A stretch of 64,000 bases of DNA, taken from assembly GCA_025558095.1 (NCBI GenBank), contig JAIVFI010000021.1, positions 124,001 to 188,000 of the forward strand. Direction: 5' to 3'. The notes below the pieces were generated by a model. That model saw nothing but the letters and a program-made list of their open reading frames with translations, did no database searches and was not told the DNA's origin. Within the stretch, counting starts at the first letter, position 1. Each line of letters begins with the position of its first letter. The DNA is from Hyaloraphidium curvatum SAG 235-1. Its lineage: Eukaryota > Fungi > Monoblepharomycota. This document shows, one piece after another, positions 27,483 through 52,851 of the stretch. Position numbers and translations under genes: made by a program.

Positions 27483-28003
27483 GTTTCCCCCGCCCGGCCA
27501 AATTGGGCCCTGCTGGCGAGGGGACGGAGTTGATCAGTGGCTTCTTGGCTGGGCGATTCCCGGGGGTGATCAGGTTGCGGGGGGCCGGGGGGGGGGGGGG
27601 GGCATGTGGGGTGTATTTGGATTGCTGCGGCCCGGACATAGATTGCTGCTGAATGCCAACGAGGAGGGATTGGGACGGGGAGGTCACGGGGGTGTATGGA
27701 AGGCGGCGTCCCAATCGAGGGTCGCCAAATTCAGGTTGCGGCAGAGGAGCTGCCGGACCGTGCCGCCGCTCGGACGCGGCGGGAAAATTAGGCCGAGTTG
27801 CAAGGCAGCATGCTGCAGGGGATGCAGTGTTCCCGGGGGTCCCGAATCGGGGTCGAGGGGATACCGCAGCTTTGGTTCGCGGGGACCCGGCGCGAACCAA
27901 GTCGAGGAATCTCCCCGACACCCCCAAACACCGGGCAGTCCCCGTACGGAGGCGACAGCCGACCCCGCTCCGCCGCCTCGGGACCCCGCGCGCACGCGCC
28001 GCC

Positions 28004-30783: not shown

Positions 30784-32487
30784 CTACCTCCCCGGCATGA
30801 ACGACCCCCGCTCCGCCAACGGCCACCCCTCCAGCCCCCCATCCCAGTCCCTCGGATCCTCCACCGCCCTCGCCAGCGCCTCCATCCCCGGCACGCACCC
30901 CGCGCTCCCCCTCAGCGCGCGGAGGCCCCCGTCCAGCCGCTTCCTTACGAACCCGCGGAGTTCGGGCTGGTCGGGCGGCAGGTCGCGGAGGAGCATGGAG
31001 AGGAGGAGGGAGAGCTTGGCGGTGCTGGTCCAGACGGTGCAGGGGAGGTGGTCCAGGGCGGTGGGGGAGGAAGCGAGGAGGGAGGAGAGGCGGTCGCATG
31101 CGGCGAGGGCGGCGTCGAGCGCGGGGACGAAGGATTCGGAGGAGAGCCACGGGTGCAGGGCGGCGGCATCGGCGACCCTTGCAGGGCACAGGCAGAGGGC
31201 GCGGAGGGTGTGCAGGTGCAGGAGGAGGTGTTCCGGCTGGGCGTGGCGGAACCGGGAGGGGGCGTCGGGGAGGAGGGTCCATGCCGGTGGGGAGGCAGGG
31301 GTGGGGCGGGCGGCGAGGAGGTCCAGGGCCGAGGCGGCGGCGTCCATGAGGTCCGGCGCGGGGGAGGAGCGGAAGGTGTGGAGGTACGCGAGCATGGCGA
31401 TGCCGTCGAGGTGGGGGAAGAGGACGGGGATGGCTCCAGGGGCAGAGAGCATCGAGGCGGTGACGGCGGGGGCGGCGGGTGCGCCGTAGGGGCGGGGGAG
31501 GGGAACATCGGCGACCAGCTCATCGGGGACGATCCAGGTGCCCGTGGACGAGCGCAGGATGCCAGAGCGGTCGTAGGCGTAGACGAACCAGCGCAGACGC
31601 CGCGCGAGCTCGCCGTCGTGGCCCTCGGCCGCGGGGTCCGTGGACGCGGCCGCGGCGGCAGCCAGGCGGAAAAGGTGCTCGGCCGGTCTCCGGTCCGGGT
31701 TGTAGAAGGTTGCGATGAAGGCAAGGTGCACAAGGGCCACGGCATCCCAGAGCAGGCTCCGCCCGTCGAGCGGGGCGGCGTGGAGGGAGGGAACGGGCAC
31801 GAGGGAGCTTTGCACGAGCTCCGTGGCCGTGGCCGTACAGGCAGCCCCCCATTTCATGCACTCTGCCGCGCTCAGGCTGCCCGGGGCCGCGTCCAAGGTG
31901 CGCTGCGAGGTCCCACTTCCCGTGCCAACCGAGGAACCGCGCGCATCGTCGTTGCCCACCCCGTCCTCTCCAATCTCATCGGCAAGATAGAAGAGCGCCA
32001 GCGCCAGCACGGCGTTCGCGGCAGCCGCGGGCATATAACCGGCGTCTCCCACCAAACGCAAGTCCACGAGAGGGAGGGTCGCATAGGCCGAAGCGGAGTA
32101 CACCTCCATCGTGCGCTGCCGCAAATCGTCGGGCACGTCTACAACGCGTCCGGTCGCGGAGCTTCGAGAGGGCGCCGGGCTCGGCAGCGGCGGCGGCGAA
32201 CGCGTCTTCCCGGCCACCGGCCCGGGCGGCACGCACGCATGCCGCTTCCTGGGCGTGCCCCGCAGCGCCGCTTCGCCGAGCGCCAGCAATTTCGCGAGAT
32301 CCGCGGCATCGGGCGCCTCGTACTCGCATTCGCCGCCGCGGGAGGCGCACCGCCCGCACCGCAGGCCCGCGAACCGGTCCGCGGGATCCCCCTCACGCCA
32401 GCCCTCGGCCGCGGCGAGGATGAGTAGCTCGATGTCGCAGACGCGACGTCGTTGCCGGCAGTACGCGCAGATCAGTCGGGGGCGCAT
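30784..32487 (-). CDS. Zn(II)2Cys6 transcription factor
   Basis: CAYCRQRRRVC-x26-CGRCASRGGEC; ELARRLRWFVYAYDR middle-homology motif. Confidence 0.8.
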   Translation of the reverse strand: MRPRLICAYCRQRRRVCDIELLILAAAEGWREGDPADRFAGLRCGRCASRGGECEYEAPDAADLAKLLALGEAALRGTPRKRHACVPPGPVAGKTRSPPPLPSPAPSRSSATGRVVDVPDDLRQRTMEVYSASAYATLPLVDLRLVGDAGYMPAAAANAVLALALFYLADEIGEDGVGNDDARGSSVGTGSGTSQRTLDAAPGSLSAAECMKWGAACTATATELVQSSLVPVPSLHAAPLDGRSLLWDAVALVHLAFIATFYNPDRRPAEHLFRLAAAAAASTDPAAEGHDGELARRLRWFVYAYDRSGILRSSTGTWIVPDELVADVPLPRPYGAPAAPAVTASMLSAPGAIPVLFPHLDGIAMLAYLHTFRSSPAPDLMDAAASALDLLAARPTPASPPAWTLLPDAPSRFRHAQPEHLLLHLHTLRALCLCPARVADAAALHPWLSSESFVPALDAALAACDRLSSLLASSPTALDHLPCTVWTSTAKLSLLLSMLLRDLPPDQPELRGFVRKRLDGGLRALRGSAGCVPGMEALARAVEDPRDWDGGLEGWPLAERGSFMPGR

Positions 32488-32893
32488 TTTTGTCTGCCAA
32501 CGAGCGTGTATGGTTCATTTCCGCAAGGAAGACAATATACAGAGCATAATAATCACGGGCTTAGGCGGACGGTCAGGTCCGCGGCCAGGCTAACCGGGCG
32601 GGCGGCCAGCTCTAACGCGCTGACCGCACAAACGCTACCCCGAAGCAACCGCCCGAACGCGGGCAAACACCCCCGCGCGGGCCCCGCCGACAGCGCAGAG
32701 CCGGACAGCTGTCGCGCGCCGAGCTCCCCGGGCCGGCGCTTCGCGCCGCGGAGGCCCGGTGCGCGAGCGGCGCCGCATCGCCCGCGGGCAAACGCTGACA
32801 GGTCGCGCGCGCGGGTTCCCCCGCGGTCCTCCCGCGCCGCGGTCCTCCCGCGCCGCGGACCCCATAGATTCGGCGGACCCCATAGATTCGCGC

Positions 32894-35800
32894 ATGGACA
32901 CCCTCGCCGCCGCGGCGGCCGCGCTGGAGCCCGTCGCGGGCCCAGGTGCCGGCGGTGACGTCGACTCGACCCCCGCCCCGCGCGCCGCGCCCAAGCCGCG
33001 CAGGCCCGCCGCCGGAGCCGCCCCCGCCCGGGAGACGGGAGAAAGGAAGCGGAAGAGCGCGGGGGAGGGCGAGGGCGGCGCCGCTGCGGGCCCCGTCGCC
33101 TCCGCCGGCGGCCTGCAGGGCCCACCGAAGCGTCGGATCGCCGCGACCAAGCCCCCGTCGGCCAAGGCGCCCGGCGAACCGGGGCGCAAGCAGCCGGCAG
33201 GCATACGCAAGAAGGATCTGGCATCGGCCGGTGCTCCGGCAGCCCGCGGAGGTGCGGCGGGCGCCCCGGACGCGGCGGGCTCGGGAGGCAGCGGAGCGAC
33301 GCGCAGGAGCAAGGTTGGCGACGCCGTCGTCCTGCACGAGGCGTCCCCGGGCGGGAATGATGCCGCTGCATCCGGTGCCGGGGCTCGCGCTCGCGGAGGA
33401 GGTGCTGGGGGCGACGGCGACGGCGCGCGGACCGGAGCTCCGGCTGGAGGGACGCCGGTCAAGGCAGGAACCCCTCCCGGCGGTCAGGAAGCGCAGAATC
33501 CTGGCGGCCAGGGATCAGATGGATCCGCTCCCGCGGCAACGGCTGCCTCGGTCCCTCCGGCGGAGGCTCCGGCTCGACCGACGGCGCGGAAGCCAAAGAG
33601 GAAGCGCGCCGCCGAAGACGACGGGGATGCGGAGCGAGCCGGTGCCGAGCCCGGTGCAGACGGCGCGGACGGAGGCTTGGGCCCCGCCGAGCGCAGCGAG
33701 CTCGAGGAGGCGCTCCGTTCCGGCCCCGCCGTGTCGGACGACCTGGAGCGCCGGGCCGCCCTCGCCGCGGACGAGGCCTGGAAGAACAGGGAGAACAGCG
33801 GGACCACGGACAGCATCTACGCCTCGCACTTTGAGCACTACAAGCTCTGGTGCGGCGGGAACGGCGTGGAGCCCTTCCCCGTCCTGCCGGCCAAGGCGGT
33901 GCTGTTCGCCGACTGGACGATGAAGCGGCCGCGCCTCAAGTCCGGCGTGAGGAAGGGCTCGAAGAAGGGGCGCACGGCGGACCAGGGCCCAGCAACCCTG
34001 GCGGCTTTGGAAGAGCTGTTCGTCACGGGCACTCGGATTGGGCCGGGTGTGGTCGGGGGCGTTCTCAACGCCCTCGAGTTCTTGCGCAAGGCCACGGCCA
34101 TCGACTTCCCCGAGGCCGATTTCCCGCAGGCCCACCGCCCGCTCCGAAGCGATCCTCGGGTGACGCGGATCGAGAAGCTCTCGAAGCAGAACAGCGCGTC
34201 GCGGCAGGCAAACTCGGAGGAGATCAAGTCGGCCGGCGGCGCGTCCAAGACCTACAACCAGCAGCAGTACCGCGACGTCGCGGACTACCATCTGCTGCGA
34301 GCGGCGAACGGCAAGAAGGCTGCCGTCACGCCGCAGGAGGCCGCCGCGGGGGTGCGCAACCGGGCACTGCACTTGATCTCGGGATCCTTGGCGGATCGGT
34401 CGTCGGACGTGCGCCCGACCGCGCTCTCGGACGTGCAGTTGCGCGAGGTGACTCTCCCAAAGACTGATCGCATTGTGGAGGTGGGCAGTCAATCTCCGTG
34501 GGTCGCGTGAAGCTTCCTAACGCTTGTTTGCCCGCCCAGCTCGGCGTCATCCTCGACAACAGCTCGAAAACAAACAAGGAAGGGGAGATCTTCGAGAAGG
34601 CGATGTTGCGGAACCCGGACGTCCGGATCTGCCCCATCAACTCGCTCGCCCTGCACAGCTATGCAACGTACCACATCCTACAGGAGCGGCCCTCGGAGCT
34701 TGCCCCCGTTTTTGACGCCAAGAGCCCGCCGTACGGCCGCAGGGACTGGTACAAGATCCCGCTGTTTCCTGGGAACGGAGAGAAGGGGGAGATCGCGTAC
34801 AAGAGTGGGTGGCCGCGGACTTCCCGCCTCTCCGTGAACTCACGGGCCCTTCTCCGCCGCAGCGCACTGGAAAGCAGTCACGGGAGCACACACGGCGCTC
34901 GGGCTCTTCGACGTCACGAAGAAGACCCACGCTGGGCGCTCGTACGCTCCGCGTCGCGCGCATGCCAAGGACTGTCCCGACGAGGACATGATGGCCCTGG
35001 GGCGGTGGAGCAACGGCAAGATCTTCCGGGAGCGATACTTGACGTCGATGCCGTGGCCGGCGGTCATCGCGACCGCCGACTCCGACGCCTCCAACCCGGC
35101 GGCCTACTACGTCCCGCGTGCGCAGCTCGGTGGGTGCCGTCGAATTGACACCTGGCGAGGCGCCACTGACGCAGCACGATCGATCGCGTCGATCCTGCAG
35201 AGCCGCCTGCGGAGCTCCAGCAACGCATCATGCCTTGGGCAGACGCCTCGCTCGCTGCGTACAAGGAGCGCCTCGAACTGGACCCGTCCAAGTACCGCGA
35301 CCCGTGCTGTGAGATGACCTGCAAGAGGTTCATTTTGGAGCGGAAGGTGCGGGGCGTCCCTTTTCCTCGGTCGTGCGTGCATGCGGGCGGTTGCTGACCA
35401 CCCTGCTTTACTCTTGCAGATCCTCCTTCAAGACGCCCCGGAGCTCATCAACCATTTCGCCCCCGAGTTCAGCAAGGACGGCTACGATGCGCACGCGGAC
35501 GACGGCCTCCCCTTCGTCTTCAAGACCGAGCTCTTCCTCTCCACCGAGTACCTGGTATGGCACCGCGAAGCGCTCGCCAAGATCGGCGAGCTGCGCGAGG
35601 CCGTGCGCCACGTGGCTGGGCCGAAGGAGTTTGTGAACGCATCGTGCCGCTCTTTCAGCAGCAGAACCTACTCTTCGGGCGCCTCGAGGAGGCTGTCTCG
35701 CGCAAGCCGGACGGGGCGTCGGCAGACCTGCGCACCGCGGTGCGCGAGGACGTGCGCGAGGACATGACCGTCCTCTACAACACGCTCGTGGAGACCCTCG

Positions 35801-36717
35801 ACTCCACCATGGAGCAGGCCATGGAGCATCTGACCGAGACGGTCACGGACGTGGTGCAGGACGTGTTCCGCAAGGCTGTGCCTTCCTTGGCGGCGGCCCT
35901 GCAGGCCCAGGTGCCGGCCGTCTCGGCCGGAAGCCCGGGCGTCTCCACCTCCTCCCCTTCGGCCCCGGCCCTCGCCAATCCATCGGCAACGGAGCTCCCG
36001 GTGCTCCTTCCCCGCCCGCAGCCCGTTTCCCAGGACGGTGGCGCCGGCCTGGGTGTTCCCCGCCCCCTGCTTTGCTTCCCCCGGCCTCCGAGCTTTCCCC
36101 CCTCCGGAAGCCCGGTCTCCGCCCTTGCTCCGCAGCCCAGCACCTCTGCAGCTCCCTCAGAACCTGCCCAGGGACCGGCAGCTGCCCCCTCGGCCGGCGC
36201 TGCGGCGGCAACGGGCCTCGACGCCGCCCAGGCGGAGAAGCGGGCGCTGGAGGCGTCGCGGCTGCGGCAAAAGTACGGAGCCAAGCTCCAGGGCATCGAC
36301 ATTGTTTTCCACAACGGGCAGATGGTACCGGCGTACGAGCTTGCCGCCGGGAAGCTGTCGATCGAGGACGCCTACAACGAGATCTACGTCGGGCGCGATG
36401 GCAAGATCTCGGTGGAGGAGCTGGACAGGGACTTTGGGCCCAAGTGGCGGCGGAACAACAACCGCATCCAAACCGAATACGGAAGGCGGAAAGCGATCAA
36501 GGAGGAGCTGGAGAAGATCCGGCGCGGCCCGCCCGCAAAGTCGCCGACGGCGGCGCTCCGGGCCCTCAAGGACAGGTTCACGGACAATGGGGCGGAGCTG
36601 ACGGCGCGGCAGGTGAGCGACCGGCTCCAGAAGGCGGCGCGGGACGCCGCCAAGGCTGCGAAGGAGGCGGCGGGCGGGGCGGGGACGGGTGCGGCCGCGC
36701 AGGGGGCTGCGGCGTGA
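32894..36717 (+). CDS. Crypton tyrosine recombinase (Ndc10-II-like catalytic domain + GCR1_C), copy 1
   Basis: Five introns: 34481-34539, 34805-34862, 35130-35200, 35347-35419, probably 35603-35658. Catalytic-type motifs R (ADRSSD), K (KTNKEG), HxxR (KTHAGR), W (GRW), Y (ERYL). Also RNPDVRICP, DWY, IMPW, ILLQDA and GCR1_C AYNEIYVGRDGKISVEELDRDFGPKWR..YGRRK. Confidence 0.9.
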
Positions 36718-37016
36718 CGGAAGGCGGGTCTTCTTGGGACATGGGGCAGTAGCGAGGTAGCGGAGGATCTTTTCGTTCTTTTCCCTGTGTTTGGTTCGGT
36801 TCAAGAATTGTAGGCCTCAGAAATCCGGTCAATCCAGTCCAGTCTGCCAGCGGGCGGCGCCCGCGGGCTCGCAAAACCTCCAGGAGGCCGGCAAGGCCGC
36901 CAGTCGCGGGCACCCTGCGCTGGCAAGAGCCGCGCTGGGCTCGTTGTCCGATTTTGCGGTCCGTTGCCGCGCTGTATCGCGGGGGTAGAGGGGTGGCGGC
37001 GAACCCACGGCACTGC

Positions 37017-37345
37017 CCCCCCACATCCCCCTCCCGCCGGCGGGAACCCCCGGAAAATCCGAACGGCCAGCGAGTTCAATACCGCGGGCACCTCGAACGG
37101 GGATTTGTCCGGCCCTTCGACCCATCCATCCCGTGTTTCGCCTCCGGAAGAACCGGCGCCCGACCGACGGTCCCCCACATCCCCCCTCCCGCCGGCGACA
37201 GCTCCCGGAAAACCCCAACGGCCAGCGAGCCCAATGCCGTGGGCACCTCGAACGGCGATTTGTCGAGGCTTCGACCCGTCCGCCCGGTGTTTCGCCTCGA
37301 AGAGCCGGCTTCCGCCAGACGGCCCTCCCCATCCCCCCTCCCGCC
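37017..37345. repeat. ~155-bp imperfect tandem duplication in the Crypton 3' non-coding region (repeated in each copy)
   Basis: CCCCCACATCCCC(C)TCCCGCCGGCG..GAAAA..AACGGCCAGCGAG..GGGCACCTCGAACGG.GATTTGTC..CTTCGACCC..GTGTTTCGCCTC at ~37017 and ~37172; a third unit begins near 37325. Confidence 0.85.
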
Positions 37346-37847
37346 GCCCTCCGGTCCCTCTGGGAGCTGGTCCAAACCGGTGCAGCAACGGTGCCCGGCC
37401 TCGGCGCGACGCACGCCGGCCGGCGGACCCGGCGGCGCCGCGGGAACACGGCACCTCCCGCGGGGGGTTCCCGCCCGCGGCCGCAATTGCGGGCTCCCCC
37501 ACCGCCACGCCCGCCGCCGCGGGCCCGCACGCCGGGGCGCCGCACGGCCCGACCGGTGCCGGAGTCGCAGCGCCGCGCGGCGGCCCGGGGGGAGCGGCGG
37601 TGCGGCGCGCGGGAGCGCGGCCGGCTTCGCCCCTCCGCGGTCGGGGCCAAACACCGCCGCCGCCGCGGCCGCCGCCGACCACGGCGCCGCGCAGGCGGAT
37701 CCCGCGGCCGCGCTGCAGGCCGGGCGGGCGGGGGGCGGCGGCCGTGGGGCAGCGGGGGAAAGGCGGTCCGGCTCCGGGGGAATGTTACACGCCCTGGGTG
37801 GGTTCGAGTCTGGCGGGGCCAATTAGAGCTGACCGCGGAACTGGCCG

Positions 37848-37873
37848 GGGAATGTTATGCGCATAACATTCCC
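37848..37873. repeat. Perfect 26-bp palindrome near the Crypton right end
   Basis: GGGAATGTTATGC|GCATAACATTCCC; also at 43276-43301 and 48700-48725. Confidence 0.95.
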
Positions 37874-38317
37874 TGCGGTCAGGGCGGCTAACGATCGGGC
37901 GGTCAGGTCTAGTTCAATTAGGCGGCGGTCAGGGGTTTGGGGGCTGACCACGGTGCACACACACAGAGCATAATAATCACGGGCTTAGGCGGACGGTCAG
38001 GTCCGCGGCCAGGCTAACCGGGCGGGCGGCCAGCTCTAACGCGCTGACCGCACAAACGCTACCCCGAAGCAACCGCCCGAACGCGGGCAAACACCCCCGC
38101 GCGGGCCCCGCCGACAGCGCAGAGCCGGACAGCTGTCGCGCGCCGAGCTCCCCGGGCCGGCGCTTCGCGCCGCGGAGGCCCGGTGCGCGAGCGGCGCCGC
38201 ATCGCCCGCGGGCAAACGCTGACAGGTCGCGCGCGCGGGTTCCCCCGCGGTCCTCCCGCGCCGCGGTCCTCCCGCGCCGCGGACCCCATAGATTCGGCGG
38301 ACCCCATAGATTCGCGC

Positions 38318-41300
38318 ATGGACACCCTCGCCGCCGCGGCGGCCGCGCTGGAGCCCGTCGCGGGCCCAGGTGCCGGCGGTGACGTCGACTCGACCCCCCG
38401 CCCCGCGCGCCGCGCCCAAGCCGCGCAGGCCCGCCGCCGGAGCCGCCCCCGCCCGGGAGACGGGAGAAAGGAAGCGGAAGAGCGCGGGGGAGGGCGAGGG
38501 CGGCGCCGCTGCGGGCCCCGTCGCCTCCGCCGGCGGCCTGCAGGGCCCACCGAAGCGTCGGATCGCCGCGACCAAGCCCCCGTCGGCCAAGGCGCCCGGC
38601 GAACCGGGGCGCAAGCAGCCGGCAGGCATACGCAAGAAGGATCTGGCATCGGCCGGTGCTCCGGCAGCCCGCGGAGGTGCGGCGGGCGCCCCGGACGCGG
38701 CGGGCTCGGGAGGCAGCGGAGCGACGCGCAGGAGCAAGGTTGGCGACGCCGTCGTCCTGCACGAGGCGTCCCCGGGCGGGAATGATGCCGCTGCATCCGG
38801 TGCCGGGGCTCGCGCTCGCGGAGGAGGTGCTGGGGGCGACGGCGACGGCGCGCGGACCGGAGCTCCGGCTGGAGGGGCGCCGGTCAAGGCAGGAACCCCT
38901 CCCGGCGGTCAGGAAGCGCAGAATCCTGGCGGCCAGGGATCAGATGGATCCGCTCCCGCGGCAACGGCTGCCTCGGTCCCTCCGGCGGAGGCTCCGGCTC
39001 GACCGACGGCGCGGAAGCCAAAGAGGAAGCGCGCCGCCGAAGACGACGGGGATGCGGAGCGAGCCGGTGCCGAGCCCGGTGCAGACGGCGCGGACGGAGG
39101 CTTGGGCCCCGCCGAGCGCAGCGAGCTCGAGGAGGCGCTCCGTTCCGGCCCCGCCGTGTCGGACGACCTGGAGCGCCGGGCCGCCCTCGCCGCGGACGAG
39201 GCCTGGAAGAACAGGGAGAACAGCGGGACCACGGACAGCATCTACGCCTCGCACTTTGAGCACTACAAGCTCTGGTGCGGCGGGAACGGCGTGGAGCCCT
39301 TCCCCGTCCTGCCGGCCAAGGCGGTGCTGTTCGCCGACTGGACGATGAAGCGGCCGCGCCTCAAGTCCGGCGTGAGGAAGGGCTCGAAGAAGGGGCGCAC
39401 GGCGGACCAGGGCCCAGCAACCCTGGCGGCTTTGGAAGAGCTGTTCGTCACGGGCACTCGGATTGGGCCGGGTGTGGTCGGGGGCGTTCTCAACGCCCTC
39501 GAGTTCTTGCGCAAGGCCACGGCCATCGACTTCCCCGAGGCCGATTTCCCGCAGGCCCACCGCCCGCTCCGAAGCGATCCTCGGGTGACGCGGATCGAGA
39601 AGCTCTCGAAGCAGAACAGCGCGTCGCGGCAGGCAAACTCGGAGGAGATCAAGTCGGCCGGCGGCGCGTCCAAGACCTACAACCAGCAGCAGTACCGCGA
39701 CGTCGCGGACTACCATCTGCTGCGAGCGGCGAACGGCAAGAAGGCTGCCGTCACGCCGCAGGAGGCCGCCGCGGGGGTGCGCAACCGGGCACTGCACTTG
39801 ATCTCGGGATCCTTGGCGGATCGGTCGTCGGACGTGCGCCCGACCGCGCTCTCGGACGTGCAGTTGCGCGAGGTGACTCTCCCAAAGACTGATCGCATTG
39901 TGGAGGTGGCAGTCAATCTCCGTGGGTCGCGTGAAGCTTCCTAACGCTTGTTTGCCCGCCCAGCTCGGCGTCATCCTCGACAACAGCTCGAAAACAAACA
40001 AGGAAGGGGAGATCTTCGAGAAGGCGATGTTGCGGAACCCGGACGTCCGGATCTGCCCCATCAACTCGCTCGCCCTGCACAGCTATGCAACGTACCACAT
40101 CCTACAGGAGCGGCCCTCGGAGCTTGCCCCCGTTTTGACGCCAAGAGCCCGCCGTACGGCCGCAGGGACTGGTACAAGATCCCGCTGTTTCCTGGGAACG
40201 GAGAGAAGGGGGAGATCGCGTACAAGAGTGGGTGGCCGCGGACTTCCCGCCTCTCCGTGAACTCACGGGCCCTTCTCCGCCGCAGCGCACTGGAAAGCAG
40301 TCACGGGAGCACACACGGCGCTCGGGCTCTTCGACGTCACGAAGAAGACCCACGCTGGGCGCTCGTACGCTCCGCGTCGCGCGCATGCCAAGGACTGTCC
40401 CGACGAGGACATGATGGCCCTGGGGCGGTGGAGCAACGGCAAGATCTTCCGGGAGCGATACTTGACGTCGATGCCGTGGCCGGCGGTCATCGCGACCGCC
40501 GACTCCGACGCCTCCAACCCGGCGGCCTACTACGTCCCGCGTGCGCAGCTCGGTGGGTGCCGTCGAATTGACACCTGGCGAGGCGCCACTGACGCAGCAC
40601 GATCGATCGCGTCGATCCTGCAGAGCCGCCTGCGGAGCTCCAGCAACGCATCATGCCTTGGGCAGACGCCTCGCTCGCTGCGTACAAGGAGCGCCTCGAA
40701 CTGGACCCGTCCAAGTACCGCGACCCGTGCTGTGAGATGACCTGCAAGAGGTTCATTTTGGAGCGGAAGGTGCGGGGCGTCCCTTTTCCTCGGTCGTGCG
40801 TGCATGCGGGCGGTTGTGACCACCCTGCTTTACTCTTGCAGATCCTCCTTCAAGACGCCCCGGAGCTCATCAACCATTTCGCCCCCGAGTTCAGCAAGGA
40901 CGGCTACGATGCGCACGCGGACGACGGCCTCCCCTTCGTCTTCAAGACCGAGCTCTTCCTCTCCACCGAGTACCTGTTATGGCACCGCGAAGCGCTCGCC
41001 AAGATCGGCGAGCTGCGCGAGGCCGTGCGCCACGTGGCTGGGCCGAAGGAGTTTGTGAACGCATCGTGCCGCTCTTTCAGCACAGCAGAACCTACTCTTC
41101 GGGCGCCTCGAGGAGGCTGTCTCGCGCAAGCCGGACGGGGCGTCGGCAGACCTGCGCACCGCGGTGCGCGAGGACGTGCGCGAGGACATGACCGTCCTCT
41201 ACAACACGCTCGTGGAGACCCTCGACTCCACCATGGAGCAGGCCATGGAGCATCTGACCCGAGACGGTCACGGACGTGGTGCAGGACGTGTTCCGCAAGG

Positions 41301-42146
41301 CTGTGCCTTCCTTGGCGGCGGCCCTGCAGGCCAGGTGCCGGCCGTCTCGGCCGGAAGCCCGGGCGTCTCCACCTCCTCCCCTTCGGCCCCGGCCCCTCGC
41401 CAATCCATCGGCAACGGAGCTCCCGGTGCTCCTTCCCCGCCCGCCAGCCCGTTTCCCAGGACGGTGGCGCCGGCCTGGGTGTTCCCCGCCCCCTGCTTTG
41501 CTTCCCCCGGCCTCCGAGCTTTCCCCCCTCCGGAAGCCCGGTCTCCCGCCCTTGCTCCGCAGCCCAGCACCTCTGCAGCTCCCTCAGAACCTGCCCAGGG
41601 ACCGGCAGCCTGCCCCCTCGGCCGGCGCTGCGGCGGCAACGGGCCTCGACGCCGCCCAGGCGGAGAAGCGGGCGCTGGAGGCGTCGCGGCTGCGGCAAAG
41701 TACGGAGCCAAGCTCCAGGGCATCGACATTGTTTTCCACAACGGGCAGATGGTACCGGCGTACGAGCTTGCCGCCGGGAAGCTGTCGATCGAGGACGCCT
41801 ACAACGAGATCTACGTCGGGCGCGATGGCAAGATCTCGGTGGAGGAGCTGGACAGGGACTTTGGGCCCAAGTGGCGGCGGAACAACAACCGCATCCAAAC
41901 CGAATACGGAAGGCGGAAAGCGATCAAGGAGGAGCTGGAGAAGATCCGGCGCGGCCCGCCCGCAAAGTCGCCGACGGCGGCGCTCCGGGCCCTCAAGGAC
42001 AGGTTCACGGACAATGGGGCGGAGCTGACGGCGCGGCAGGTGAGCGACCGGCTCCAGAAGGCGGCGCGGGACGCCGCCAAGGCCTGCGAAGGAGGCGGCG
42101 GGCGGGGCGGGGACGGGTGCGGGCCGCGCAGGGGGCTGCGGCGTGA
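38318..42146 (+). pseudogene. Crypton recombinase copy 2, frameshifted as assembled
   Basis: Many 1-2 bp indels relative to copies 1 and 3 (e.g. extra C ~38399, missing T ~40136, insertion ~41083); may be sequencing error. Confidence 0.7.
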
Positions 42147-43745
42147 CGGAAGGCGGGTCTTCTTGGGACATGGGCAGTAGCGAGGTAGCGGAGGATCTTT
42201 TCGTTCTTTTCCCTGTGTTTGGTTCGGTTCAAGAATTGTAGGCCTCAGAAATCCGGTCAATCCAGTCCAGTCTGCCAGCGGGCGGCGCCCGCGGGCTCGC
42301 AAAACCTCCAGGAGGCCGGCAAGGCCGCCAGTCGCGGGCACCCTGCGCTGGCAAGAGCCGCGCTGGGCTCGTTGTCCGATTTTGCGGTCCGTTGCCGCGC
42401 TGTATCGCGGGGGTAGAGGGGTGGCGGCGAACCCACGGCACTGCCCCCCCACATCCCCCTCCCGCCGGCGGGAACCCCCGGAAAATCCGAACGGCCAGCG
42501 AGTTCAATACCGCGGGCACCTCGAACGGGGATTTGTCCGGCCCTTCGACCCATCCATCCCGTGTTTCGCCTCCGGAAGAACCGGCGCCCGACCGACGGTC
42601 CCCCACATCCCCCCTCCCGCCGGCGACAGCTCCCGGAAAACCCCAACGGCCAGCGAGCCCAATGCCGTGGGCACCTCGAACGGCGATTTGTCGAGGCTTC
42701 GACCCGTCCGCCCGGTGTTTCGCCTCGAAGAGCCGGCTTCCGCCAGACGGCCCTCCCCATCCCCCCTCCCGCCGCCCTCCGGTCCCTCTGGGAGCTGGTC
42801 CAAACCGGTGCAGCAACGGTGCCCGGCCTCGGCGCGACGCACGCCGGCCGGCGGACCCGGCGGCGCCGCGGGAACACGGCACCTCCCGCGGGGGGTTCCC
42901 GCCCGCGGCCGCAATTGCGGGCTCCCCCACCGCCACGCCCGCCGCCGCGGGCCCGCACGCCGGGGCGCCGCACGGCCCGACCGGTGCCGGAGTCGCAGCG
43001 CCGCGCGGCGGCCCGGGGGGAGCGGCGGTGCGGCGCGCGGGAGCGCGGCCGGCTTCGCCCCTCCGCGGTCGGGGCCAAACACCGCCGCCGCCGCGGCCGC
43101 CGCCGACCACGGCGCCGCGCAGGCGGATCCCGCGGCCGCGCTGCAGGCCGGGCGGGCGGGGGGCGGCGGCCGTGGGGCAGCGGGGGAAAGGCGGTCCGGC
43201 TCCGGGGGAATGTTACACGCCCTGGGTGGGTTCGAGTCTGGCGGGGCCAATTAGAGCTGACCGCGGAACTGGCCGGGGAATGTTATGCGCATAACATTCC
43301 CTGCGGTCAGGGCGGCTAACGATCGGGCGGTCAGGTCTAGTTCAATTAGGCGGCGGTCAGGGGTTTGGGGGCTGACCACGGTGCACACACACAGAGCATA
43401 ATAATCACGGGCTTAGGCGGACGGTCAGGTCCGCGGCCAGGCTAACCGGGCGGGCGGCCAGCTCTAACGCGCTGACCGCACAAACGCTACCCCGAAGCAA
43501 CCGCCCGAACGCGGGCAAACACCCCCGCGCGGGCCCCGCCGACAGCGCAGAGCCGGACAGCTGTCGCGCGCCGAGCTCCCCGGGCCGGCGCTTCGCGCCG
43601 CGGAGGCCCGGTGCGCGAGCGGCGCCGCATCGCCCGCGGGCAAACGCTGACAGGTCGCGCGCGCGGGTTCCCCCGCGGTCCTCCCGCGCCGCGGTCCTCC
43701 CGCGCCGCGGACCCCATAGATTCGGCGGACCCCATAGATTCGCGC

Positions 43746-46700
43746 ATGGACACCCTCGCCGCCGCGGCGGCCGCGCTGGAGCCCGTCGCGGGCCCAGGTG
43801 CCGGCGGTGACGTCGACTCGACCCCCGCCCCGCGCGCCGCGCCCAAGCCGCGCAGGCCCGCCGCCGGAGCCGCCCCCGCCCGGGAGACGGGAGAAAGGAA
43901 GCGGAAGAGCGCGGGGGAGGGCGAGGGCGGCGCCGCTGCGGGCCCCGTCGCCTCCGCCGGCGGCCTGCAGGGCCCACCGAAGCGTCGGATCGCCGCGACC
44001 AAGCCCCCGTCGGCCAAGGCGCCCGGCGAACCGGGGCGCAAGCAGCCGGCAGGCATACGCAAGAAGGATCTGGCATCGGCCGGTGCTCCGGCAGCCCGCG
44101 GAGGTGCGGCGGGCGCCCCGGACGCGGCGGGCTCGGGAGGCAGCGGAGCGACGCGCAGGAGCAAGGTTGGCGACGCCGTCGTCCTGCACGAGGCGTCCCC
44201 GGGCGGGAATGATGCCGCTGCATCCGGTGCCGGGGCTCGCGCTCGCGGAGGAGGTGCTGGGGGCGACGGCGACGGCGCGCGGACCGGAGCTCCGGCTGGA
44301 GGGGCGCCGGTCAAGGCAGGAACCCCTCCCGGCGGTCAGGAAGCGCAGAATCCTGGCGGCCAGGGATCAGATGGATCCGCTCCCGCGGCAACGGCTGCCT
44401 CGGTCCCTCCGGCGGAGGCTCCGGCTCGACCGACGGCGCGGAAGCCAAAGAGGAAGCGCGCCGCCGAAGACGACGGGGATGCGGAGCGAGCCGGTGCCGA
44501 GCCCGGTGCAGACGGCGCGGACGGAGGCTTGGGCCCCGCCGAGCGCAGCGAGCTCGAGGAGGCGCTCCGTTCCGGCCCCGCCGTGTCGGACGACCTGGAG
44601 CGCCGGGCCGCCCTCGCCGCGGACGAGGCCTGGAAGAACAGGGAGAACAGCGGGACCACGGACAGCATCTACGCCTCGCACTTTGAGCACTACAAGCTCT
44701 GGTGCGGCGGGAACGGCGTGGAGCCCTTCCCCGTCCTGCCGGCCAAGGCGGTGCTGTTCGCCGACTGGACGATGAAGCGGCCGCGCCTCAAGTCCGGCGT
44801 GAGGAAGGGCTCGAAGAAGGGGCGCACGGCGGACCAGGGCCCAGCAACCCTGGCGGCTTTGGAAGAGCTGTTCGTCACGGGCACTCGGATTGGGCCGGGT
44901 GTGGTCGGGGGCGTTCTCAACGCCCTCGAGTTCTTGCGCAAGGCCACGGCCATCGACTTCCCCGAGGCCGATTTCCCGCAGGCCCACCGCCCGCTCCGAA
45001 GCGATCCTCGGGTGACGCGGATCGAGAAGCTCTCGAAGCAGAACAGCGCGTCGCGGCAGGCAAACTCGGAGGAGATCAAGTCGGCCGGCGGCGCGTCCAA
45101 GACCTACAACCAGCAGCAGTACCGCGACGTCGCGGACTACCATCTGCTGCGAGCGGCGAACGGCAAGAAGGCTGCCGTCACGCCGCAGGAGGCCGCCGCG
45201 GGGGTGCGCAACCGGGCACTGCACTTGATCTCGGGATCCTTGGCGGATCGGTCGTCGGACGTGCGCCCGACCGCGCTCTCGGACGTGCAGTTGCGCGAGG
45301 TGACTCTCCCAAAGACTGATCGCATTGTGGAGGTGGGCAGTCAATCTCCGTGGGTCGCGTGAAGCTTCCTAACGCTTGTTTGCCCGCCCAGCTCGGCGTC
45401 ATCCTCGACAACAGCTCGAAAACAAACAAGGAAGGGGAGATCTTCGAGAAGGCGATGTTGCGGAACCCGGACGTCCGGATCTGCCCCATCAACTCGCTCG
45501 CCCTGCACAGCTATGCAACGTACCACATCCTACAGGAGCGGCCCTCGGAGCTTGCCCCCGTTTTTGACGCCAAGAGCCCGCCGTACGGCCGCAGGGACTG
45601 GTACAAGATCCCGCTGTTTCCTGGGAACGGAGAGAAGGGGGAGATCGCGTACAAGAGTGGGTGGCCGCGGACTTCCCGCCTCTCCGTGAACTCACGGGCC
45701 CTTCTCCGCCGCAGCGCACTGGAAAGCAGTCACGGGAGCACACACGGCGCTCGGGCTCTTCGACGTCACGAAGAAGACCCACGCTGGGCGCTCGTACGCT
45801 CCGCGTCGCGCGCATGCCAAGGACTGTCCCGACGAGGACATGATGGCCCTGGGGCGGTGGAGCAACGGCAAGATCTTCCGGGAGCGATACTTGACGTCGA
45901 TGCCGTGGCCGGCGGTCATCGCGACCGCCGACTCCGACGCCTCCAACCCGGCGGCCTACTACGTCCCGCGTGCGCAGCTCGGTGGGTGCCGTCGAATTGA
46001 CACCTGGCGAGGCGCCACTGACGCAGCACGATCGATCGCGTCGATCCTGCAGAGCCGCCTGCGGAGCTCCAGCAACGCATCATGCCTTGGGCAGACGCCT
46101 CGCTCGCTGCGTACAAGGAGCGCCTCGAACTGGACCCGTCCAAGTACCGCGACCCGTGCTGTGAGATGACCTGCAAGAGGTTCATTTTGGAGCGGAAGGT
46201 GCGGGGCGTCCCTTTTCCTCGGTCGTGCGTGCATGCGGGCGGTTGCTGACCACCCTGCTTTACTCTTGCAGATCCTCCTTCAAGACGCCCCGGAGCTCAT
46301 CAACCATTTCGCCCCCGAGTTCAGCAAGGACGGCTACGATGCGCACGCGGACGACGGCCTCCCCTTCGTCTTCAAGACCGAGCTCTTCCTCTCCACCGAG
46401 TACCTGGTATGGCACCGCGAAGCGCTCGCCAAGATCGGCGAGCTGCGCGAGGCCGTGCGCCACGTGGCTGGGCCGAAGGAGTTTGTGAACGCATCGTGCC
46501 GCTCTTTCAGCAGCAGAACCTACTCTTCGGGCGCCTCGAGGAGGCTGTCTCGCGCAAGCCGGACGGGGCGTCGGCAGACCTGCGCACCGCGGTGCGCGAG
46601 GACGTGCGCGAGGACATGACCGTCCTCTACAACACGCTCGTGGAGACCCTCGACTCCACCATGGAGCAGGCCATGGAGCATCTGACCGAGACGGTCACGG

Positions 46701-47569
46701 ACGTGGTGCAGGACGTGTTCCGCAAGGCTGTGCCTTCCTTGGCGGCGGCCCTGCAGGCCCAGGTGCCGGCCGTCTCGGCCGGAAGCCCGGGCGTCTCCAC
46801 CTCCTCCCCTTCGGCCCCGGCCCTCGCCAATCCATCGGCAACGGAGCTCCCGGTGCTCCTTCCCCGCCCGCAGCCCGTTTCCCAGGACGGTGGCGCCGGC
46901 CTGGGTGTTCCCCGCCCCCTGCTTTGCTTCCCCCGGCCTCCGAGCTTTCCCCCCTCCGGAAGCCCGGTCTCCGCCCTTGCTCCGCAGCCCAGCACCTCTG
47001 CAGCTCCCTCAGAACCTGCCCAGGGACCGGCAGCTGCCCCCTCGGCCGGCGCTGCGGCGGCAACGGGCCTCGACGCCGCCCAGGCGGAGAAGCGGGCGCT
47101 GGAGGCGTCGCGGCTGCGGCAAAAGTACGGAGCCAAGCTCCAGGGCATCGACATTGTTTTCCACAACGGGCAGATGGTACCGGCGTACGAGCTTGCCGCC
47201 GGGAAGCTGTCGATCGAGGACGCCTACAACGAGATCTACGTCGGGCGCGATGGCAAGATCTCGGTGGAGGAGCTGGACAGGGACTTTGGGCCCAAGTGGC
47301 GGCGGAACAACAACCGCATCCAAACCGAATACGGAAGGCGGAAAGCGATCAAGGAGGAGCTGGAGAAGATCCGGCGCGGCCCGCCCGCAAAGTCGCCGAC
47401 GGCGGCGCTCCGGGCCCTCAAGGACAGGTTCACGGACAATGGGGCGGAGCTGACGGCGCGGCAGGTGAGCGACCGGCTCCAGAAGGCGGCGCGGGACGCC
47501 GCCAAGGCTGCGAAGGAGGCGGCGGGCGGGGCGGGGACGGGTGCGGCCGCGCAGGGGGCTGCGGCGTGA
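43746..47569 (+). CDS. Crypton tyrosine recombinase, copy 3 (intact)
   Basis: Same ORF set as copy 1 offset by 10852 bp; one visible substitution (A33452 vs G44304). Confidence 0.9.
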
Positions 47570-49174
47570 CGGAAGGCGGGTCTTCTTGGGACATGGGGCA
47601 GTAGCGAGGTAGCGGAGGATCTTTTCGTTCTTTTCCCTGTGTTTGGTTCGGTTCAAGAATTGTAGGCCTCAGAAATCCGGTCAATCCAGTCCAGTCTGCC
47701 AGCGGGCGGCGCCCGCGGGCTCGCAAAACCTCCAGGAGGCCGGCAAGGCCGCCAGTCGCGGGCACCCTGCGCTGGCAAGAGCCGCGCTGGGCTCGTTGTC
47801 CGATTTTGCGGTCCGTTGCCGCGCTGTATCGCGGGGGTAGAGGGGTGGCGGCGAACCCACGGCACTGCCCCCCCACATCCCCCTCCCGCCGGCGGGAACC
47901 CCCGGAAAATCCGAACGGCCAGCGAGTTCAATACCGCGGGCACCTCGAACGGGGATTTGTCCGGCCCTTCGACCCATCCATCCCGTGTTTCGCCTCCGGA
48001 AGAACCGGCGCCCGACCGACGGTCCCCCACATCCCCCCTCCCGCCGGCGACAGCTCCCGGAAAACCCCAACGGCCAGCGAGCCCAATGCCGTGGGCACCT
48101 CGAACGGCGATTTGTCGAGGCTTCGACCCGTCCGCCCGGTGTTTCGCCTCGAAGAGCCGGCTTCCGCCAGACGGCCCTCCCCATCCCCCCTCCCGCCGCC
48201 CTCCGGTCCCTCTGGGAGCTGGTCCAAACCGGTGCAGCAACGGTGCCCGGCCTCGGCGCGACGCACGCCGGCCGGCGGACCCGGCGGCGCCGCGGGAACA
48301 CGGCACCTCCCGCGGGGGGTTCCCGCCCGCGGCCGCAATTGCGGGCTCCCCCACCGCCACGCCCGCCGCCGCGGGCCCGCACGCCGGGGCGCCGCACGGC
48401 CCGACCGGTGCCGGAGTCGCAGCGCCGCGCGGCGGCCCGGGGGGAGCGGCGGTGCGGCGCGCGGGAGCGCGGCCGGCTTCGCCCCTCCGCGGTCGGGGCC
48501 AAACACCGCCGCCGCCGCGGCCGCCGCCGACCACGGCGCCGCGCAGGCGGATCCCGCGGCCGCGCTGCAGGCCGGGCGGGCGGGGGGCGGCGGCCGTGGG
48601 GCAGCGGGGGAAAGGCGGTCCGGCTCCGGGGGAATGTTACACGCCCTGGGTGGGTTCGAGTCTGGCGGGGCCAATTAGAGCTGACCGCGGAACTGGCCGG
48701 GGAATGTTATGCGCATAACATTCCCTGCGGTCAGGGCGGCTAACGATCGGGCGGTCAGGTCTAGTTCAATTAGGCGGCGGTCAGGGGTTTGGGGGCTGAC
48801 CACGGTGCACACACACACGAAAAGCGAGTCGTTCATTTCGCCGCGCTCCCCTCGCCTCGACCCCCGAATCCCCGACGCGAAAAGGTAGCAATTGGTGGAC
48901 GTTGGACCGGCCAGGGCGCAGAGGAACTATCCTCGTCCGTGGACACGAACTAAAGCCAGGAAATACGCGTGCGGATTCAAAGACTCACGAAGGACAGATC
49001 GACTCGGTCGTGACCGTTATTCCCGCCCATCTCCCAGGCCTTCACGCTGCGTGCACACCATTTCGATAGCGAGCAACTAGACTTGTCGTGAAGGGGGTTC
49101 TCAATTGCATTGCCACTGACCCAAAATACACGGAGCTTCGGTCGGATTGCTCATCCGCAGTGAGGCACGTTTCG

Positions 49175-50098
49175 CTACAGATTGGACCTCCTCCGCCGCG
49201 GGATTCCGACGGCTCCGACGCGAGCCAGCCCAACGATCTCCTCCGATGCGAACCCGAGCTCGCCCAACACCTCCTCCGTGTGCTCGCCCAACCCCGGCGC
49301 ACGGGTCGGCGCCTTCCCCGTGCCCTCTTCCCCTTCGACGCGGAACGGGCACCGCACGGTGCTCCCTTTCCCGTCCTCAAACTCGGCAAAGAACCCGCAC
49401 TCCCTGGGCTGCGCGTCCGCCGCGACCGCCCCCGGTCCCGGCAGCCCCGGGCCCAACGAAGGCACACCCGACGGCTCCCCGTTCAGGTCCCCGTGGAGCG
49501 GCGCAGCGGCGGCCCATAGCCCGTTGGCGAGCAGCGCGGTGCTCACGTGCGAACCCTTGCCCGTGCGCTCCCGGTTGTACAGGGCGAGCAGGACGCCGGC
49601 GACGAGGGAGACGGCGGTGGGGTGGTCGCCCGTGCCCGGTATCGGGGAGGTGCGCAGGATGGAAAGCATCCCCGAGCGGGCCCAGTAGGCTTGCGGGTCG
49701 AACCCTGGCGCGTCGGCCTCGGGTCCTCGCTCGCCGTACGCCGAGACCGACGCGTAGATGAGCCGCGGGTTGAGCGCCGACAGCGACGCGTAGTCGATCC
49801 CCATCCGTTCGCGCGACGAGGGCAGCGCGTTGGTCACGAACACGTCCGCGCCCTTCACGAGCCTGCGGAGCACCTCGCGCGCCTCGGGCCGCTTCAGGTC
49901 CAGCGAAATGCAGCGCTTGTTCCTGTTGGTCGTGTCGTACGGGTACGCCCCACTTATGCCGAACGCGGCGCCGCGCCACGGGTCGCCCCAGGGGGGCTCG
50001 ATGCGCACGACCGACGCGCCAAAGTCGGCGAGGAGCGTCGAGGTGGAGGGGCCCGCAATGAAGGTCGCGCAGTCCACGACGCGCAGGTGCGAGAGCAT
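49175..50098 (-). CDS. CoA-transferase family III (CaiB/BaiF), intronless, apparently internally shortened
   Basis: LRVVDCATFIAGP..LLADFGASVVRIEPP.GDPWR, NRNKR.ISLDLK, ADVFVTN, NPRLIYASVSAYG..GP..GFD, APGLGEHTEEVL. About 307 aa versus ~400 typical. Confidence 0.85.
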   Translation of the reverse strand: MLSHLRVVDCATFIAGPSTSTLLADFGASVVRIEPPWGDPWRGAAFGISGAYPYDTTNRNKRCISLDLKRPEAREVLRRLVKGADVFVTNALPSSRERMGIDYASLSALNPRLIYASVSAYGERGPEADAPGFDPQAYWARSGMLSILRTSPIPGTGDHPTAVSLVAGVLLALYNRERTGKGSHVSTALLANGLWAAAAPLHGDLNGEPSGVPSLGPGLPGPGAVAADAQPRECGFFAEFEDGKGSTVRCPFRVEGEEGTGKAPTRAPGLGEHTEEVLGELGFASEEIVGLARVGAVGIPRRRRSNL

Positions 50099-50308
50099 CG
50101 AGACGGAAGGCGACTGCAGATTCGTTGGAAGCTCAGAAACACGCGTTTCGCTCGCTTTCGGCGCGACGCGGCCGAGGTAGTGGACGATGCGTTTCGGGGG
50201 AGACAATGCACGAGTCGATCGCGAAAGCGCGATAGTGCCGGCCCCTCGTTCTCGAAGGAATCTCCCGTCTCCCTGGCCGCGTCCTTCCAGGAAACATCGG
50301 GCGAAAAG

Positions 50309-51270
50309 ATGGCCGCAGCCAACAATTTCGTCGGTGGCCCCGTCAGAGTGGCCTACTGGTGCGCGTCGCGCCTTCCATGACGTGTCTTGTGACAGTCTCC
50401 CGTCCTCACCTCTGTTCCATTCCCTGCCAACCGTACCTTGCGGTCGCGCTTTCGCCTCCCGGCTACCACGGCGGAACGCAGGGACTATCCCATCGCCCGC
50501 GGGAACAATATCCGCCTCGTGCTCGCGGACCTCGGCGGACCTCGGAATCCCGTTCGAAGACGTCGTCCCGGGGACGATCGAGGAGTGGCCCGCGGAAAAG
50601 AAGCGCATCCTCGAAAACAAGATCAACCTCGGCACGCTGCCCTGGGTCGAGCTGCCCGATGGGAGGGTGATCGGGGAGCACCTCGCTTTTCTCCGGTACG
50701 TAGCGAGGAAGGCGGGCGGCGAACTGTACCCCGTTGAGGACCCCGAGAAAGCTTTGGTTGTGGATGAGGTAGCATTTCGCGTTCTTGACGGATCGGAGAA
50801 CGGACCGCCGACCTCCACTGCAGATGCTGGACCTCAACTAGGACTGGAGGCTCAACCGCCGCGAACGCCCTTTCGTTCTCCCTCATCTCCATCGGCTCCC
50901 TCCATGTCATCTCACCCCGTTCTCCTGCAGCTACGAGCGATCCCGCCTCGCCATCCTCGACGTGATCGAGCACCGCTACGCCACGAACCCGTTCCACGGC
51001 CCAGGCCCGATCACCATCGCGGACCACTTCACCTACCAGACCCTCGTCGAATGGCCTCCTGCTATACTTCCAGGGGCGGATGCGAGGTTTCCGGAGCTGG
51101 TCAAGCTCAGGGAGGCGATGAAGCAGAGGCCTGGGATCAAGGCGCTGGAGGAGAGCCAGAAGGGGAGGAGCGAGGCGGTGCCGGAGATGGTCGCCCAAAG
51201 CCAGCCTCATTTGGCGGAGATGTACCGCCGGGTGGTGGGCGAAGACGAAGTCAAGGCACGCGAAGAATAG
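50309..51270 (+). pseudogene. Glutathione S-transferase pseudogene
   Basis: VAYW|DYPIARGNNIRLVLADLGIPFED..GTLPWVE. Frameshifting 10-bp duplication at 50525-50544 and in-frame TAG at 50839-50841 (MLDLN*DWR). Confidence 0.8.
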
Positions 51271-52473: not shown

Positions 52474-52851
52474 GCCGCGGCAGCCCTGACGAGTTGGGTG
52501 ATCTTTTTCTTTGGCAGCGCAGTGTCGGCATCGCAAGGGTGCCCAGTAACCTCGGTCGCGCCGGCGATGATCCCGTCGGTAAGCCACGACGGCGGCGACA
52601 TTTCGTTGCCGGAAGAGACGGTACGGGGGTTGACCATGTCAGTCAGGTCGAAGGGCGAGCACACGCCGCGATCTCACGGCGTGCAGAACGCGGTCGAGTG
52701 ACGATAGGGAAGGAGTCGCGGAGGCGCGGGACGGGCCAGGCAGGCCGTGGGCAGGGAACCATCACTTTTGGGGGTCGCGCCGGGGCATATAGCCGGCGGC
52801 TGGGGGCTATCCCTAATCAGCCCCGTTTCCGAGTCAGCGTCCCCGACGGCC

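Follow-up and report, generated by a model that had tools for sequence, protein, structure and literature searches.

Locus and copies of the unit

The window analysed here is a stretch of 64,000 nucleotides from the fungus Hyaloraphidium curvatum SAG 235-1 (GenBank assembly GCA_025558095.1, contig JAIVFI010000021.1, here C21, positions 124,001 to 188,000, forward strand); coordinates without a contig label are window positions. At 32539-48818 on the plus strand, the C21 assembly contains a head-to-tail trio of 5.42-kb units with no foreign DNA in between. Each unit is a Crypton, a transposon that encodes a tyrosine recombinase. The reading that we favour, and regard as reasonably probable, is that a young CryptonF-type element forms an intergenic tandem here, that the joints between its copies are the circle junction of the element, that a dimer is the main state of the array, and that the array lineage is frameshifted. 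The array is made up as follows.

32529-32540, plus strand: left target half AAGACAATAT and the shared AC; solo copy L001 on contig C22 has the same left flank
32539-37962, plus strand: array copy 1, 5424 bp, which matches the left copy on contig C49 exactly; its private A at 33452 puts Thr in place of Ala
37952-37969, plus strand: joint 1, GGTGC(AC)4AGAGC (GGTGCACACACACAGAGC), equal to the inferred circle junction
37963-43390, plus strand: array copy 2, 5428 bp, missing from C49; probably unpolished consensus and weakly supported
43380-43397, plus strand: joint 2, GGTGC(AC)4AGAGC, the same letters as joint 1
43391-48814, plus strand: array copy 3, 5424 bp, which matches the right copy on C49 exactly
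48815-48828, plus strand: shared ACAC (48815-48818) and right target half GAAAAGCGAG; together with the left half this rebuilds AAGACAATAT(AC)2GAAAAGCGA

The unit spacings within the array are 5424 and 5428 bp. Copies 1 and 3 are a single base apart (33452, A versus G), and copy 2 departs from both by 15 one-base insertions or deletions (indels), mostly in short C/G runs, and two substitutions. In a whole-genome search, the joint sequence was found at only one other place in the 31.9-Mb genome, the redundant contig C49 described below. The first-pass annotation of the window had reported three units of about 5.42 kb joined end to start without host DNA, with GGTGC(AC)4AGAGC at both joints; coordinates, spacings and joint sequences all hold. 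The array is intergenic and lies between an F-box protein gene (27653-30556, plus strand) and a family III CoA-transferase gene (49175-50818, minus strand), with about 360 bp separating it from the end of the CoA-transferase reading frame. An FAD-dependent oxidoreductase gene follows at 52747-54012 on the plus strand.

A catalogue of the other genomic copies and their ends, as proposed in the first-pass annotation, yielded two solo copies that share the ends of the array unit and a truncated one that lacks both.

C22:612043-617473: solo copy L001, 99.7% identical to the array unit, same ends
C2:568462-573843: solo copy L002, 98.7% identical to the array unit, same ends
L003:1501-5332 (C2:557579-561410): truncated copy L003, 95% identical, both ends gone, stopping within the GCR1_C domain

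The flanks at the array locus, on C22 and on C2 are mutually unrelated, with nothing in common beyond about 20 bp. The unit has therefore been mobile, having copies with the same ends at unrelated loci. The array-type lineage is confined to the present locus.

Recombinase gene

The exons were delimited on the array unit with the help of public sequencing runs, namely an RNA run and two small DNA runs (X1 and X2) from a single sample; each run was used as contigs and compared with 32200-38199. Its features in copy 1 are listed below.

32894-34480, plus strand: exon A, begun at the only in-frame ATG; N-terminal region and first catalytic Arg block
34391-34414, plus strand: catalytic Arg block ADRSSDVR, in exon A
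34540-34804, plus strand: exon B; Pfam NDC10_II (Crypton-type recombinase fold), E-value 2.6e-7
34863-35129, plus strand: exon C; H-x-x-R motif (THAGR, 34925-34939) and catalytic Tyr (FRERY, 35024-35038)
35201-35346, plus strand: exon D; RNA-defined introns and exon-wise tblastn matches
35420-35767, plus strand: exon E in the form assembled for the array; the frame of exon D meets a stop at 35765-35767
35640-35641, plus strand: array-specific 1-bp deletion; CGCGATCG in L001, L002 and L003 reads CGCATCG in the array, and is not a homopolymer
35641-36717, plus strand: ancestral continuation of exon E, with GCR1_C at about 36295-36630; out of frame in the array, in frame in L001 and L002

The four introns (34481-34539, 34805-34862, 35130-35200 and 35347-35419) are spliced out in RNA contigs, and all have GT..AG borders. 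The transcripts come mostly from the 95%-identical truncated paralogue L003, whose splice sites are identical in the array unit. Exons were searched singly, and continuity of the frame follows from exon-length arithmetic. The ancestral product, starting at the sole in-frame ATG at 32894, would have about 1187 residues.

Several lines of evidence identify this protein as a Crypton recombinase. Exon B matches NDC10_II with 30.4 bits against a Pfam cut-off of 26.3, and Pfam places GCR1_C on the plus strand of the unit with an E-value of 3e-9. The two domains belong to one protein, as exon E of L001 and L002 is a 432-residue open frame that includes GCR1_C (E-value 6.7e-9). A full HMMER search with the recombinase stretch recovered 74 distant homologues, at no more than 40% identity over about 100 residues. 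Seven of nine full-length homologues scanned contain both NDC10_II and GCR1_C, the remaining two NDC10_II alone. When the homologous proteins were compared by tblastn with the unit, exon by exon from A to D, E-values went down to 6e-38, and the R, H-x-x-R and Y of the unit fall in conserved columns of the alignment. Word-index protein searches with the 583-residue upstream open frame and with exon E gave no matches. Neither inverted repeats nor long direct repeats are present at the termini, where ACAGAGCATAATAATC... and ...CTGACCACGGTGC(AC)n are neither complementary nor alike, and the inverted repeats listed across the joint include no terminal pair.

Judged by its sequence, the unit is a CryptonF-type tyrosine-recombinase transposon with a five-exon gene and a C-terminal GCR1_C domain; we assign it to CryptonF because the combination of NDC10_II and GCR1_C defines that group (PMC3212892). 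On the homology searches above, it ranks as a new and divergent member. The first-pass annotation had called the element a Crypton that keeps its catalytic motifs in copies 1 and 3. Both statements stand: tyrosine recombinase and GCR1_C, the lack of terminal inverted repeats and of target duplication, and the same ends elsewhere in the genome all agree with a Crypton, and R, H-x-x-R and Y were located in both copies.

The same annotation had also called the element intact, and here we disagree. All five assembled array copies (three in C21, two on C49) have three indels in common when compared with both solo copies: loss of CTCCG in intron 3, loss of a G after 35640, and loss of a G at 37938. 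In L001 and L002, exon E runs for 432 codons through GCR1_C to its stop. In the array copies, the G missing after 35640 shifts the frame of exon E, leading to a premature stop at 35765 and a product of about 870 residues that keeps the recombinase and loses GCR1_C. As assembled, the array copies are probably defective, and we consider the frameshift likely to be genuine.

The Crypton family is young, with 99.7% and 98.7% identity between the array unit and the solo copies, and it is transcribed; the element is thus recent, as first proposed. Of the spliced transcripts in the RNA run, those of L003 are the commonest (contig depth of about 790, compared with about 80 for the tail of the intact family), and one RNA contig continues from L003 into its flank. 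Another RNA contig (depth about 535) starts beside an adapter at L002:6882, equivalent to window position 37790, and exits the right end into the host flank, which suggests an outward-reading promoter within the terminal 170 bp of the element (equivalent to 37790-37965). The non-coding parts of the unit contain a 155-bp repeat, present 2.2 times, and a pair of neighbouring tandem duplications of 16 and 18 bp (37017-37346; 32821-32890). L002 is without 34 bp of the 16- and 18-bp duplications and has a 15-bp in-frame deletion at 34060-34074.

Ends, target site and circle junction

The borders of the element at the three insertion sites are given below.

Window: left AAGACAATAT(AC)1AGAGC; right GGTGC(AC)5GAAAAGCGAG
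C22: left AAGACAATAT(AC)2AGAGC; right GGTGC(AC)4GACTC
C2: left TGATTT(AC)1AGAAC; right GGTGC(AC)4ATATG

Rejoining the flanks of the window or C22 insertion gives AAGACAATAT(AC)2GA, as at uninterrupted sites. No target-site duplication is present at these two insertions, since the rejoined flanks restore the uninterrupted motif with nothing doubled. That motif, AAGACAATATACACGAAAAGCGA, with (AC)2, occurs at more than 10 other (paralogous) sites in the genome, and the 12-mer GACAATATACAC has 41 genomic matches at up to one mismatch, compared with 10 for a reversed control. A model with a 2-bp target duplication was ruled out by the AC counts and the uninterrupted (AC)2 motif. We also rejected the idea that the target motif is part of a larger repeat shared by the insertions, as the flanks are alike over only about 20 bp.

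We predicted the sequence of the circle joint as follows. In a conservative exchange, the AC count of the joint equals the left count plus the right count minus that of the target. The window insertion gives 1 + 5 - 2 = 4 and the C22 insertion gives 2 + 4 - 2 = 4; the joint observed in the array is (AC)4. For the C2 insertion, with counts of 1 and 4, an (AC)4 joint requires a target with (AC)1. The agreement between the array joint and the prediction from independent insertions supports a conservative exchange without duplication, and it supports the identification of the internal joint with the circle junction of the element, as the first-pass annotation had proposed from the letters of the array. 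Its further claim of base-precise ends has to be relaxed. The window and C22 insertions used crossover registers 2 bp apart, and the ends of the element are consequently precise only up to the AC tract. As read from these borders, insertion proceeds by a crossover within a short stretch of AC repeats and strongly favours AAGACAATAT^ACAC^GA (target AAGACAATATACACGA).

The AC tracts also bear on how the tandem arose. A real tandem could have been made without the recombinase, by slippage or unequal exchange at AC microhomology, followed by homologous unequal crossover that changed the copy number. The (AC)1 and (AC)5 tracts beside the element do offer microhomology, the protein of the array lineage is truncated as assembled, and the array-type copies all sit at one locus. 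Such an origin seems unlikely to us: independent insertions predict just the (AC)4 that the joint shows, which would be roughly a one-in-five coincidence, 2 bp of microhomology is a poor substrate, and the intact solo copies could provide recombinase in trans.

Just inside the right end are three direct CGGTCAGG motifs (37876-37933, plus strand), and another lies just inside the left end (32570-32577). A unit contains five such motifs where 0.23 would be expected by chance, and four of the five are within 90 bp of the ends, making them candidate protein-binding sites beside the crossover. The symmetry of a classical attachment site (inverted arms of 11-13 bp around a spacer of 6-8 bp) is not recognisable at the joint.

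Two further observations concern the targets. A dispersed repeat (L026:99-917, L050, L052 and more than 30 other loci) has a fixed end, TACACGAAAAGCGAAGCCCTGCCCCCCGAAATTTACCC..., and another end that is cut back to varying degrees, giving lengths from 14 bp to about 0.95 kb. A piece of 10-14 bases of this repeat lies at window 48815-48828, and AAGACAATA adjoins about half of the repeat copies. The fixed end is the exact site of two of the three Crypton insertions. The pattern resembles that of 5'-truncated retroelement tails on the opposite strand; Pfam and Rfam searches with the repeat gave no matches. At the C2 insertion (around 568440 and 573880), the target shows a local imperfect duplication, CCCG(T/C)TTGCCC...TGATTTACA, which occurs immediately left of the element and once more some 37 bp beyond its right end.

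Copy number of the array

Contig C49 (28,112 bp; L007, L009 and L008) corresponds in its entirety to the locus at window 24966-58461, but contains two units instead of three. It keeps the A/G marker at 33452, its left unit being copy 1 and its right unit copy 3. The stretch C49:2660-22174 (19,515 bp, comprising 4.95 kb of left flank, the two units and 3.7 kb of right flank) is identical to C21 minus copy 2. All differences between C49 and C21 lie in the outer ends of C49 and nearly all are indels, including a 36-base poly-C run (C49:1780-1815). These differences break the oxidoreductase frame that is open in C21, showing that the C49 ends are the faulty version. Genes called on C49 duplicate those of C21, and the contig is redundant.

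Copy 2 of the array resembles the C49 ends in the kind and density of its differences, about 3 per kb. Its ratio of indels to substitutions is 15:2, compared with 8:24 for real paralogues (Fisher p = 4e-5). A coherent explanation would be that dimer-spanning reads polished the centre of C49 while few reads backed copy 2, and that the C49 ends were starved because reads fitted C21 better. That the array is at least a dimer, made up of copies 1 and 3, is well supported by the assembled sequences. The third copy is weakly supported, and is either an assembly over-expansion or a minor variant. The exact trimer of the first-pass annotation is not upheld, given the 15 indels and two substitutions of copy 2 and the two-copy version of the locus on C49.

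The DNA runs contribute allele evidence. Array-specific alleles are found in the DNA contigs as T at 34693 (X1) and G5 at 37938 (X2); in X2 they stand alongside the solo-type alleles C at 34693 and +CTCCG. Word depths of the contigs are not usable as copy numbers, and the allele wins are mixed (T in X1 and C in X2 at 34693; +G at 35640 in both). The only conclusion that we draw from them is that array-type alleles are present at an abundance comparable to that of solo-type copies.

Three other accounts of the copy number were considered. The trimer of C21 may be the true and sole state of the locus, with C49 a collapsed artefact and copy 2, the hardest of the three to anchor, showing indels from failed polishing. 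C21 is a long primary contig, and the middle copy of a 16-kb array could presumably be polished only by very long reads, in which case errors would be expected even in a real copy. The array-type allele moreover beats three solo-type copies at 34693 in one DNA run, which fits about three array copies. However, solo-type alleles prevail at 35640 and 35176, and a C49 with 19.5 error-free kb at its centre and error-rich ends suggests reads that uniquely fit a dimer. We regard a true trimer as possible but doubtful.

At the other extreme, the whole tandem could be an assembly artefact, with a single copy at the locus that was over-expanded in both contigs. The joint is not seen at read level in the run contigs, C21 and C49 differ on the copy number, and copy 2 is of draft quality. 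Against this, the same joint occurs in two contigs, both of which preserve the A/G difference between left and right copies, and the dimer sits in the polished centre of C49. Array alleles are also about as abundant as two or three solo-type copies, whereas a lone array copy should win no assembly bubble. An artefact of this kind is very improbable. Hardly more probable, in our estimation, is that the two- and three-copy versions are both real and coexist in the culture, units being gained and lost by recombinase exchange between joints and ends. If true, the locus would be a live substrate for watching the copy number of a Crypton rise, with a frameshifted array driven in trans by the solo copies.

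Origin of the array

Under the reading that we favour, a dimeric tandem of a young element, the duplication was local and very recent, because the array lineage has no members elsewhere in the genome and a single base separates copies 1 and 3. In the proposed mechanism, the right end of one copy would meet the left end of another in a conservative tyrosine-recombinase exchange, producing the joint. In the simplest route, the exchange would involve two sister chromatids, the right end of the element on one joining the left end on its partner. Alternatively, and formally equivalent, an excised circle would re-integrate into the end of a resident copy. Either route would yield a tandem with the exact circle joint and an empty site, and the empty allele would read AAGACAATATACACGAAAAGCGAG. 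Integration of a dimeric circle is indistinguishable here from exchange or re-integration. As the frameshift of the array copies cuts off GCR1_C, the full protein would have come in trans from L001 and L002, the intact solo copies.

Several points weigh against this reading. No contig of the sequencing runs crosses the joint or the borders between flank and element, the DNA run contigs being of low depth and breaking at the element ends. One DNA contig begins exactly at 32539, those nearest the joint end at 37908 and 37943, and the left flank is uncovered; the joint is neither confirmed nor refuted by the runs, since the contigs stop short at the element ends. In short contigs, the joint of a chromosomal tandem also looks no different from that of a circle. 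The contigs of both DNA runs carry only the +G form after 35640. This would be expected if the +G copies (L001, L002 and L003) equal or outnumber the array copies, but the loss of the G could also be an error of the consensus, and the array copies would then be intact. The argument from the centre of C49 hinges on how the contigs were assembled and polished. A microhomology-mediated duplication would produce an (AC)4 joint about one time in five without any recombinase. Finally, two relatives in other genomes are solitary (in short-read assemblies).

The value of the locus is limited by an unsettled copy number and by array copies that are probably defective. Its joint, GGTGC(AC)4AGAGC, is the sequence to seek in circle assays.

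Comparison with known systems

To our knowledge, no class of eukaryotic DNA transposons is less well understood than the Cryptons, and we know of no isolation of their circular intermediate. They were reportedly first described by Goodwin and colleagues in 2003. We found no tandem or concatemeric Cryptons in the literature searched, a search that did not extend to the founding paper (Goodwin et al. 2003).

CryptonF elements of fungi and oomycetes encode an R-H-R-Y recombinase with a C-terminal GCR1_C domain, lack terminal inverted repeats and target duplications, share a 4-6 bp direct repeat between one terminus and the target, and have few, near-identical copies in any one genome (Kojima and Jurka 2011, PMC3212892). 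The present unit is like them in its domains, the structure of its ends, the repeat common to terminus and target, and its few near-identical copies. It differs in that this repeat, instead of being a fixed word of 4-6 bp, consists of 2-4 bp of an AC tract and serves in two registers, and in its strong preference for a target of about 16 bp (compare PMC3212892). Its protein is also distant, with at most 40% identity over about 100 residues to any homologue found.

Multiple lysogens and tandem integrative elements of bacteria arise when a circle integrates into the end of a resident copy, or by exchange between a left and a right end, and consist of head-to-tail copies joined by an attachment site. 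The present array appears to share the head-to-tail arrangement and the circle-junction joint with these tyrosine-recombinase tandems. In contrast to them, the element is a transposon of a eukaryotic nucleus and its gene is spliced, and the structure of a classical attachment site is not recognisable at its joint.

In Drosophila, tandem dimers of transposons that form by double insertion are reported to seed larger arrays via unequal exchange (McGurk and Barbash 2018, PMC5932611). The array described here likewise consists of copies of one element, head to tail at a single site. The Drosophila elements use other transposition chemistries (PMC5932611).

The first Crypton seen moving is CryptonF-1_cRei of Chlamydomonas reinhardtii (Lopez-Cortegano et al. 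2023, PMC9977147). This element ends in CACCG and targets the near-identical CAYCG; it excises cleanly and yet its copy number goes up, which was ascribed to a 'complex mode of transposition' (PMC9977147). Our case differs from CryptonF-1_cRei in host, terminal motif and target, and in that no movement was observed; conversely, the text of PMC9977147 contains no tandems. The likeness lies in a terminal motif that matches the target, and forming a tandem with a circle junction would be one means of raising the copy number. By analogy, the behaviour of the present element fits the Goodwin model as tested in Chlamydomonas (PMC9977147). That study, the sole one to have seen Cryptons move, left the copy gain of a cut-and-paste element unexplained (PMC9977147), and the tandem in H. 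curvatum suggests a simple route to it, in which sister chromatids recombine right end to left end.

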